Origin: Blastocystis sp. Blastoise
Lineage: Eukaryota > Protista > Bigyra: Opalinata
DNA length: 64,000 nucleotides
Assembly: GCA_039096225.1 (NCBI GenBank)
Contig: JBBPEB010000005.1
Location: 1,178,001-1,242,000 of the forward strand
Direction: 5' to 3'
Made by a program: the position numbers and the translations under genes. How positions within the stretch are numbered: position 1 is the stretch's first letter; the number at the start of each line of letters is the position of its first letter. The notes under the pieces are model-generated. The model saw only the letters and a program-made list of their open reading frames with translations, was not told where the DNA came from and ran no database searches. Of the stretch, positions 22,691 through 25,600 are shown one piece after another.

Positions 22691-25600
22691 TTAATAATCA
22701 TCATTCCAGTCATAATTGCTATTATATTCATAATCATCATAGTCATTATTATTCCAATGGTCAAAATACATGTCTTCATAATGATTATTAGGAAGAAAAG
22801 AAGAAGAAGAATATGAATCATTTGAATCAGAAAGAGGTTCATGCTCAATATTATTCTTAAAATTATTAATATGTATTCGATTACGACGACTATTCTTAAA
22901 ATTATTAGTATATAATCGAGTACCAACAGTCTTCTTATTCTTTTGATTTTTAGTTTGTGAGACAGTATTTGAAGTAGAAGTACCCTTTGTGGTATTCTTA
23001 TAGTTATTTGATTTAGTAGTAGTTGAATTATTGTGTTTTGTAAGAGGAGAAAGTGAAGGAATATAGGAAGCATAAGAAGAAGAAAGAGCAGAATTATTAT
23101 TATTATTATTATTATTATTATTATTATTATTATTATTATTATTATTATTATTATTATTATTATTATTATTATTATTATTATTATTATTATTATTATTATT
23201 ATTATTATTATTATTATTATTATTATTATTATTATTATTATTATTATTATTATTATTATTATTATTATTATTATTATTATTATTATTATTATTATTATTT
23301 GGAAGTATTAATGCTTCTGTAGAATGAGCAATAGATATTGCTAATTGGTTTTTCGTTGTATTCTTATCATTTTCATTCATTTCTGAAGTATTTTCATGAT
23401 TATTATTTGCTTGTTTTATTATGGTTTCATTCTTATTATTTGTATCTTCATCAATACTAAATAATTGAGACATGGAGGAAGAAGAAGAAGATAGAATAAA
23501 CGAAGACGATTCTGATGAACTATTATTATTATTATTATCTGAGATATTATTATTATTATTATTATTATTATTATTATTATCATTATTATTATTATTATTA
23601 TTATTATTATTATTATTATTATTATTATTATTATTATTTCTCTTAATATACACTCGTTTTCTATTATAATCATTATATCCTATAGAATTACGTTTATATG
23701 AAGTCATTGCATTTGAAACAAAATTTTGATTCAACTTAAATTGACTGAAATCATCTGATTCCTCATCACTTGATGAACTTAATAATTCAACAATATCACT
23801 TGACCTTGTAGATAGAGACGACAAAGGCTTTGAGGGAACAACTAGCGAGAAAGCATTTTCTGAAGGATTTATTGTTGCTATGGGAGAGGGATTCAATTGA
23901 TTGGCGGGCAACGATGGAGGGATTGTATTTGTATTATCTGTATTATTATGAATAGTATTACTCATAATATTATTATTAGTAGTATTACTCATAATATTAT
24001 TGTTAGTAGTATCACTTGAAATATTAGTGTTATTATCAATAGCCTTATTTATTTCTATATCTTTAGAATTATTTGAAATATTGTCTTGATTTGAAGAATC
24101 CCCACGGGAATCATGATTTGTGATTGACGACATATCTGCTATTGTTGAAGTAACTTGTTGTGTATTAGAAACAGCAGTATCCCCAGAATTATTTGTAGAT
24201 TCCATTTGATTGGCTGTTGAATCATCAGCCACAATTTGAGTAGTGGATAACGCATCACTCGTCATGGTAGTATCATGTGTAATTGAGGATTCATTGAATG
24301 AATTTGTAACTGTATTTACTATTATATCATTATTATGATTAGTTTGTGTATTATTATTAATAGTATTCTCATTTTCTTTATTGATTTGCTTATTTGAAGA
24401 TGATAAAGTTTCAGTAGTTTGAATAGGGGAGACAACAGAACCGTTTTCTATAGTGTTCACTAAAGGTAAAGAATCAGTTACTTCTGTTTGATTCAACATA
24501 TTATTTTGAGAAGTAGATATAGTACCACTTGAGTGTGATTGATTAGAAGGTTTATCTAATTGAGTAGAAGGAATGGATTCTATATGTGTATTATTAGTAT
24601 TGTTTATAGAGGGATGAGGAGTAGTAGAATCATCAGAAGAATGAATAGGAGAAGAAGGAGCATAAGTAGGAGAAGAAGGAGTAAAAACAGGAATAGTTGG
24701 AGAATAAGTCAGAGAATCTCGTTTTTTAGGTGGACCAACGGGACCATATATAGGTGAATTTGGTGAATAAGAAGGTGAAGTAGGAGAATAAGCGGGAGAT
24801 GTAGGAGAATAATCAGGTGTAGTAGGAGAATAAGCGGGAGATGTAGGACTATAAGCAGGAGATGTAGGTGAATAATCAGGTGTAGTAGGAGAATAAGCGG
24901 GTGAAGTATTATTATAATCAGGTGTAGTAGGAGAATAATCAGGTGTAGTAGGAGAATAAGCAGGAGATGTAGGAGAATAAGCAGGAGAGGTAACATTATA
25001 ATTAGGTGAAGTAGGACTATAAGCAGGAGAAGCAGGAGAATAAGAAGGAGTACTTTGTTGATTTGTATTGTTTCTTGAAGTAGAAGCAGAAGATGTTACA
25101 GTTCTTGTGGTATTTGAAGGAATAGTATTCCTTAATGGGGGATCTATTCGTCGATTTAATGAGGGTTTAAAGCGAGGTCCTCGTGTAACTGTCTCAGGAG
25201 GTACTATATAATAATATTATTATAATAAGGAACTATGATAAATAAGATGTAGTATTATATATTAAGAAAAATATAGATTGAAATAAAATTTTACACAGAC
25301 GAATTATAATGATATATATAATTTGATATATATAATAAGTATATGAATAATGAATATATATATATATATATATATATACAACTAGAGAGAGGAGTAACAT
25401 TGATGTTACGAATAGAGGGGGACATTCGAACGCCATTTAACACACTTCCTGATTGTGACGGTGCAACCGATTGGAAAACACTGATTCTTGATTGGCGGAG
25501 ATCGTTCACCGTACGATGTGACATGCGACTGAAATTCATTTCTTCTTGTTCACTACTGGAGGATAGAATTTCGATGATGCTGTCTTTGTCATCACTATCC

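Follow-up and report, generated by a model that had tools for sequence, protein, structure and literature searches.

A CTD-type heptad array in the last exon of a predicted SIZ/PIAS-family SUMO E3 ligase gene of a tortoise Blastocystis

Introduction

To our knowledge, the carboxy-terminal domain (CTD) of RNA polymerase II (Pol II) has been treated as a signature unique to the RPB1 protein. Pairs of its heptads constitute the unit that is read by kinases, phosphatases, and CTD-interaction domains (CIDs). The kinases that phosphorylate it are of the CDK7/9/12 type, and its binding partners include CID, capping-enzyme, and Ssu72-type factors. Here, we describe an array of 14 heptads of this type that resides in the last exon of a gene predicted to encode a SUMO E3 ligase of the SIZ/PIAS family in Blastocystis sp. 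'Blastoise'. The DNA analyzed, referred to throughout as the window, is a stretch of 64,000 nucleotides (assembly GCA_039096225.1, contig JBBPEB010000005.1, positions 1,178,001 to 1,242,000 of the forward strand), and coordinates given without a contig name are positions within it. A preliminary description of the window, made from the letters alone, had first drawn attention to the heptads.

The organism is an isolate from a Russian tortoise, with a genome of 33.3 Mb, a GC content of 23%, and long introns (PMC10690189). Proteins of tortoise Blastocystis share 40–42% identity with those of human subtypes, and identity is as low as 56% within the tortoise clade itself (PMC10690189).

Fourteen phased heptads of CTD type

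Translation of the minus strand in the frame from 25201 yields 14 consecutive, exactly phased heptads between 25042 and 24749, with the consensus YSPTSPA. Tyr1 and Pro6 are present in 14 of 14 units. Positions 2, 3, and 4 hold the canonical residue in 12 units each, the exceptions being Asn twice at Ser2, Val and Asn at Pro3, and Ala and Asn at Thr4. Position 5 is Ser in ten units and Thr in four, while position 7 is the most variable (Ala in seven, Asp in four, and Asn, Ser, and Ile in one each). Translation thus reproduces every residue count that had been claimed for the array, as well as the degenerate units said to follow it: about four decayed heptads, ending in YAPSSPI, can be read as far as 24644. 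The 98 residues of the array proper contain 28 Ser/Thr-Pro sites, and overlapping pair matches show ten or more of its heptad pairs to be intact. As had been pointed out, the frame meets no stop codon between the acceptor at 25203 and its end at 22691, and an ATG-limited open reading frame begins only at 24499.

The resemblance to the CTD is evident in profile and protein searches alike. Pfam PF05001 (RNA_pol_Rpb1_R) matches the heptad exon with an E-value of 1.4e-12 and 47.5 bits (cut-off 20.3), and a protein search with the heptad part retrieves the tails of RPB1 proteins of widely different eukaryotes, at E-values down to 1e-147. The array shows the tandem, in-phase Y-S-P-T-S-P-x units that characterize a CTD. 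Its position is not that of a CTD, which lies at the RPB1 C-terminus: the array belongs to a SUMO ligase gene on contig C31, while RPB1 lies on contig C3 with a CTD of its own. It is therefore CTD-like, and not a CTD.

The array in the spliced message

Public run X1 contains contigs from the ligase locus in which introns have been removed, and which are therefore RNA-derived. In one of them, 26061 is followed directly by 25949, so that a GT..AG intron of 111 nt within the SP-RING (exons 7 and 8) is absent. Another runs from 25545 to 25392, continues for 12 more letters to reach 25380 immediately before a GT, and resumes at 25203 to proceed to 25003; this junction between exons 9 and 10 completes a codon divided between the two exons, keeps the frame, and leads into the first two heptads. 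Further mismatch-free contigs of the same run extend over 24786–24617, which comprises the last and the decayed heptads, and over 24597–23700. Both edges of the array are tied in RNA to unique flanking sequence. The heptad exon, assigned to the ligase gene in the preliminary description, is indeed spliced in frame to the preceding exon with its SUMO-interacting motifs (SIMs), and the array truly belongs to the transcribed reading frame of that gene. No single short-read contig crosses its interior (25003–24786), where high-depth contigs, probably derived from RPB1, cross-map. Runs X2 and X3 gave only low-complexity matches of 31–40 nt at the locus and were uninformative.

Architecture of the ligase gene

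The gene occupies ten minus-strand exons with GT..AG borders, and the splice phases of all ten are mutually consistent (Table 1). The exons begin with a start codon at 28059, end with a stop codon at 22691, and together amount to 4080 nt, equal to 1360 codons. The predicted protein comprises a SAP domain, a PHD-like finger, a split SP-RING, SIM-like motifs, the heptads, and an Asn-rich tail with another SIM. Database matches were obtained with the exons searched one by one.

Table 1. Exons and protein features of the predicted ligase gene (window coordinates)
Feature	Position	Strand	Basis
Exon 1, start codon and SAP	27919..28059	-	ATG 28059, GT donor 27918; Pfam SAP
Exon 2, Lys/Glu-rich linker, phase-1 end	27766..27853	-	AG acceptor 27855-27854, GT donor 27765; predicted from sequence
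Exon 3	27504..27617	-	Phases fit exons 2 and 4; predicted
Exon 4, first half of PHD-like C4HC3 finger (CxC..CxxC..HxxC)	27125..27267	-	Pfam PHD below cut-off; Cys/His spacing
Exon 5, last CxxC of PHD-like finger and expected PINIT region	26747..27025	-	Open frame, phase-0 borders
Exon 6, rest of PINIT-position region	26420..26551	-	Phase-0 borders, GT..AG; predicted
Exon 7, SP-RING first half	26061..26282	-	Pfam zf-MIZ 2-24; PDB PIAS2 4fo9 residues 204-237
Exon 8, SP-RING second half	25749..25949	-	Pfam zf-MIZ 24-49; PDB PIAS2 239-299, PIAS3, SIZ2, SIZ1
Exon 9, two SIM-like motifs and Ser-rich linker, phase-1 end	25380..25629	-	Sequence; contig joins 25380 to 25203
Exon 10, last exon, 836 codons and stop, about 2.5 kb	22691..25203	-	Open frame; RNA-derived contigs
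Fourteen phased CTD-type heptads, four identical YSPTTPD units	24749..25042	-	Translation, PF05001, tandem-repeat periods of 21 and 63 bp
Decayed heptads	24644..24748	-	Translation
Second PIAS-type SIM, IVELL core	23750..23797	-	Residues 469-484 of exon-10 translation
Two poly-Asn tracts (about 31 and 69 residues), short spacer	23093..23638	-	Translation

Assignment to the SIZ/PIAS family, and with it the predicted SUMO E3 ligase activity, follows from the SAP, zf-MIZ, and PDB matches. The SAP domain expected of such a protein is recognized by Pfam on exon 1 (E 3.4e-06; 27 bits, cut-off 23.9). The two SP-RING exons align to contiguous parts of PIAS2, and each zf-MIZ half scores below the whole-domain cut-off because an intron divides the SP-RING. 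An intron likewise splits the PHD-like finger and keeps its score low: Pfam PHD matches the first half with an E-value of 0.0099 and 16.3 bits, below the cut-off of 24. All eight Cys/His ligands of the finger are found across exons 4 and 5, the last spacing being short. The gene had been labeled SAP-PHD-SP-RING; the first and last of these domains are borne out by matches, and the middle one is represented by a PHD-like finger below the Pfam cut-off. A PINIT domain was not recovered by Pfam, PDB, or phmmer when exons 5 and 6 were searched apart, although the position is right. Exon 3 has an alternative in-frame acceptor 24 nt upstream, at 27641.

The SIM-like motifs of exon 9 read DIVSL followed by SDSDD, and IIEIL followed by SSSSEQEE (25578–25540). 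The predicted SIM beyond the SP-RING, a further feature of SIZ/PIAS proteins, was thus recognized by reading the translation. A second such motif, with the IVELL core, lies further along in exon 10 and resembles the phospho-SIM of animal PIAS proteins. The array therefore lies between two SIM-like motifs (25578–25540 and 23797–23750), as originally described. It is internal to the protein, which continues for about 650 residues after it and has an acidic-aromatic end. Exon 10 also carries a duplicated nonapeptide, TTNNNIMSN, at 23950–24010; together with the poly-Asn runs, this repeat appears as a sign of active repeat growth in the exon.

Only one other zf-MIZ locus exists in the genome (C23:607084-607188). 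There the start codon leads straight into the SP-RING and neither a SAP nor a PINIT is in view, which marks the product as a different kind of SP-RING protein. Elsewhere in the window, an alpha-galactosidase or alpha-N-acetylgalactosaminidase is encoded at 44712–45605 (+), with at least four paralogues in the genome at 60–68% identity, in keeping with the expansion of carbohydrate enzymes reported for tortoise isolates (PMC10690189).

Heptads elsewhere in the genome

A genome-wide search with PF05001 identified two loci only, the ligase array and C3:1628516-1628932, within the last exon of RPB1. The question raised in the preliminary description, whether RPB1 keeps its own CTD, can thus be answered in the affirmative: the polymerase subunit retains 24 heptads on contig C3, and their consensus is YSPTSPA rather than YSPTSPS. 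Minor variants of this CTD (N7, D7, and N2) also appear in the ligase array. The RPB1 CTD occupies an exon of its own (C3, about 1628270-1629058) with YNTSSPA and N7 variants, and the body of RPB1 is split into many exons, each of 180 amino acids or less.

The coding pattern YSPT[S/T]P occurs 17 times in RPB1 and ten times in the ligase array, and otherwise in the 33.3-Mb genome only as three single look-alikes, two of which have in-frame stops while the third reads YTPTTP. The canonical heptad in this genome is restricted to RPB1 and the ligase gene, far beyond chance. A more permissive scan for Y-x-P-x-x-P-x-Y-x-P revealed tandem runs at RPB1, at the ligase array, and at a third array considered below; the other 12 matches are isolated and in line with a reversed-pattern control (19).

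Age, constraint, and origin of the array

At the DNA level, Tandem Repeats Finder reports a higher-order period of 63 bp, or three heptads (4.5 copies, 82% identity), which outscores the 21-bp period. The 14 units comprise 11 different DNA sequences, and the four YSPTTPD units are identical. The preliminary description had noted that position 7 is Asp whenever position 5 is Thr. This pattern is present, and it is not an independent covariation: the apparent rule reflects one variant unit copied four times within the 63-bp repeat.

Across unit pairs of the ligase array, the proportion of synonymous differences (pS) is 0.33 and that of nonsynonymous differences (pN) is 0.21, a ratio of 0.65; the corresponding values for the RPB1 CTD are 0.28, 0.17, and 0.62. 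By this crude measure, constraint on the array appears equal to that on the true CTD. The variation in codon usage that had been described as consistent with protein-level constraint is real, and the constraint is moderate, with a ratio only moderately below 1 and equal to that of the CTD. Tyr1 and Pro6 show no replacement anywhere in the array, while the codons for Pro6 vary silently. With silent divergence accumulated and these two residues intact, the array is therefore not a fresh product of slippage. Codons for Ser2 are of both the TCN and the AGT type.

Codon choice offers a further clue to origin. As in the RPB1 CTD, AGT is used only at Ser2, CCC is preferred at Pro6, and TCA at Ser5, a position-specific resemblance with P 0.0002 over all units and about 0.01 over unique units. 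This signal hints at descent from RPB1-type heptad DNA; a context-dependent codon preference could be an alternative source of it. The array probably came from RPB1-type heptad DNA, or converged on it, and later expanded by duplicating a three-heptad unit.

A possible CTD in trans

The reading that we tentatively favor, while stopping short of calling it probable, is that the array acts as a CTD in trans, as the preliminary description had proposed, and brings the ligase to Pol II. Under this scenario, its Ser2-Pro3 and Ser5-Pro6 sites would be presented to CTD kinases and phosphatases, and the array would offer CTD readers and CTD-driven Pol II clusters the same docking surface as RPB1. The ligase would become concentrated at Pol II engaged in transcription, the site at which RPB1 and its associated factors are SUMOylated, and the SIMs on either side of the array may hold the SUMOylated products.

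Several observations, here and in other organisms, make such a role plausible. The genome encodes candidate readers and erasers of CTD marks, namely, four CID-domain loci and Ssu72 loci. The two Ssu72-like loci lie at C8:2099376-2099922 and C29:730717-731360; the stops inside these matches could reflect introns or the decay of one copy. In yeast, Siz1 is a SUMO ligase for Rpb1, acting mainly on K1487 in the linker adjacent to the CTD (PMC2668072), and SUMO dependent on Siz1/Siz2 controls Ser2-phosphorylated Rpb1 (PMC6884465). Moreover, Trf4 and Sen1 contain short mimics of the CTD through which they bind the CID of Nrd1 (PMC4186968, PMC7110113), which indicates that non-polymerase proteins use likeness to the CTD for CID docking.

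A more far-reaching proposition holds that the ligase has gained a functional CTD module, probably from RPB1-type DNA, that this module, read and written by the proteins that act on the CTD, targets SUMOylation to the transcription cycle, and that selection conserves it across the tortoise-Blastocystis clade. Taken in its entirety, this proposition is doubtful.

Alternative explanations

The main rival, in our ranking, is a near-neutral expansion of low-complexity sequence, in which a short S/P/T/Y seed within a Ser/Thr-rich tail of the sort usual in PIAS proteins, or a scrap of heptad DNA from RPB1, was amplified through slippage or unequal exchange and is tolerated as a disordered spacer. 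We regard this as distinctly possible, and a number of observations that bear on it weigh against a CTD role. Low-complexity sequence makes up 11.8–12.7% of the genomes of tortoise isolates (PMC10690189). With this share near 12%, and with two long poly-Asn tracts and a duplicated nonapeptide in the very exon that holds the heptads, repeat growth appears to be cheap here. The 63-bp higher-order repeat and its four identical YSPTTPD units speak of recent duplication, the latter being recent copies of one another. The third Tyr/Pro heptad array, at C31:865718-865809 (+), about 312 kb before the window, consists of YNPPSPD in four copies and demonstrates that such repeats can arise in this genome; its 21-bp units are identical and are followed by YNPTPPT, in an exon of an Asn-rich protein. 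A pN/pS of 0.65 amounts to weak to moderate constraint. The longest exact DNA match between the array and the RPB1 CTD, 35 nt, has a P of 0.012 against background codon usage and of 0.31 against synonymous shuffles of the array, and on the latter value the match was discounted as evidence for a recent transfer of DNA from RPB1. Protein searches with the last exon and with exon 5 found no conserved orthologue: residues 186–522 of the last exon gave zero matches, not even the query itself, and the same was true of exon 5 in a phmmer search of 1.84 billion representatives. Lastly, the junction between exons 8 and 9 was placed by phase and proximity.

Neutral growth accounts less readily for the identity of the repeated unit, which is more than merely S/P-rich: it agrees with the canonical heptad of the CTD at each of the six positions that define it, carries the A7 flavor of this organism, and recurs elsewhere in 33 Mb only in RPB1. 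Silent differences have accumulated to a pS of 0.33, yet Tyr1 and Pro6 remain intact in 14 of 14 units. The switch between TCN and AGT codons at Ser2 requires either two changes by way of non-Ser codons or an inherited multi-unit origin.

An unlikely alternative is that the array forms a phosphoregulated tail of the ligase with no link to Pol II. Its S-P and T-P sites would then be substrates of general proline-directed kinases (cell-cycle CDKs, MAPKs) or of a prolyl isomerase, and would tune the stability or localization of the ligase or the activity of its SIMs. The density of 28 S/T-P sites in 98 residues fits this scheme, as do the Asp residues at position 7 of four units, which mimic negative charge, and the location of the array between acidic, Ser-rich SIMs; in animal PIAS proteins, SIMs of this kind are phosphoregulated elements. 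Generic proline-directed sites, however, need neither a Tyr at a strict seven-residue period nor the full YSPTSP, and the likeness to the CTD of the same organism, minor variants included, is left unexplained.

It is very improbable that the association is an artifact, be it an assembly chimera with RPB1, which the preliminary description had named as a reason to abandon its claim, or two genes with the heptad exon outside the ligase mRNA: the array interior without a single spanning contig and the lack of any annotated protein over the ligase gene in protein-database searches lend it some credence, whereas mismatch-free RNA contigs anchor both array edges and show the in-frame splice of exons 9 and 10, RPB1 with its full CTD lies on C3 and is flanked by sequence unrelated to that beside the ligase array, and 836 codons run on without a stop in DNA of 22% GC.

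Relation to known systems

Among SIZ/PIAS proteins, the plant members carry a PHD finger (PMC6954211), and the layout of the Blastocystis ligase appears closest to that of plant SIZ1. Like Arabidopsis SIZ1, the predicted protein has an N-terminal SAP, a C4HC3-like finger ahead of the catalytic part, an SP-RING, one or more SIMs, and a long disordered C-terminus. Unlike the plant proteins, it comes from a stramenopile, its finger is weakly PHD-like (below the Pfam cut-off, with a short C5-C6 spacing), and a PINIT is not detectable by sequence. We know of no described SIZ1 with CTD heptads. The ligase also resembles yeast Siz1/Siz2 and animal PIAS1-4 in the PDB matches of its SP-RING, and the animal PIAS proteins in a SIM with a hydrophobic core and acidic-Ser stretch; those proteins reach Pol II without heptads of their own, whereas the Blastocystis ligase possesses them.

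With the RPB1 CTD the array shares tandem, phased YSPTSPx units, the A7 consensus, minor variants, and a similar divergence between units. It differs in having no polymerase core attached, in comprising 14 (+4) rather than 24 units, in being internal rather than C-terminal, and in its YSPTTPD variant, which is not found in the RPB1 CTD. The Nrd1-interaction motifs of Trf4 and Sen1 likewise place CTD-like sequence in non-polymerase proteins, with CID binding in that case and likeness of sequence only in the present one. They are single, short, and only loosely similar to a phosphorylated heptad, in contrast to the full canonical multi-heptad array of the ligase.

Heptads outside RPB1 may not be unique to the Blastocystis ligase. 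A MATH-domain model from Mytilus californianus (P0075, 501 amino acids) has about 25 YSPTSPS-type heptads behind an unrelated domain. The model, automatic and unverified, differs from the ligase in its partner domain and bears the source name 'RPB1-like'; it may represent either another case of heptads outside RPB1 or a mis-model. Another match to PF05001, P0009, proved to be a mis-joined RPB1 C-terminus.

Database and literature searches, which were a weak test, yielded no SIZ/PIAS protein with a heptad array. Residues 1–260 of the last exon returned RPB1 fragments only, since the heptads dominate the search words, and no zf-MIZ protein was among the 120 matches listed. The ligase gene itself seems to be missing from protein databases or to be modeled differently there, and the public annotation may lack or mis-model it; a neighboring gene of the same NCBI genome was returned by protein search, and the ligase gene was not. 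A metagenome scan with exon 8 recovered two distant PIAS-like loci, at 40% and 34% identity, neither with heptads in any frame. The second of these SP-RINGs lies on JAEEGK010002840.1 (17% GC), with no heptads within 8 kb on either side. A search of the ESM Atlas for look-alikes, with RPB1 families excluded, gave no usable match.

Implications

Should the array prove to be neutral, it would serve as a caution: where a genome is prone to repeats, sequence identical in type to the canonical CTD can emerge, or be copied, in genes other than RPB1. Should it act as a CTD in trans, the ligase would be the first enzyme known to use a complete array of canonical CTD heptads for its targeting, and an example of a low-complexity module moving between genes. 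Experiments on the CTD 'code' depend on artificial fusions. With a natural enzyme that bears such an array, one could ask whether CTD heptads are enough by themselves to bring a protein to the transcription apparatus or to CTD-driven condensates. Such an enzyme would also offer a mechanism by which SIZ/PIAS ligases reach Pol II, a targeting that is known but poorly explained.

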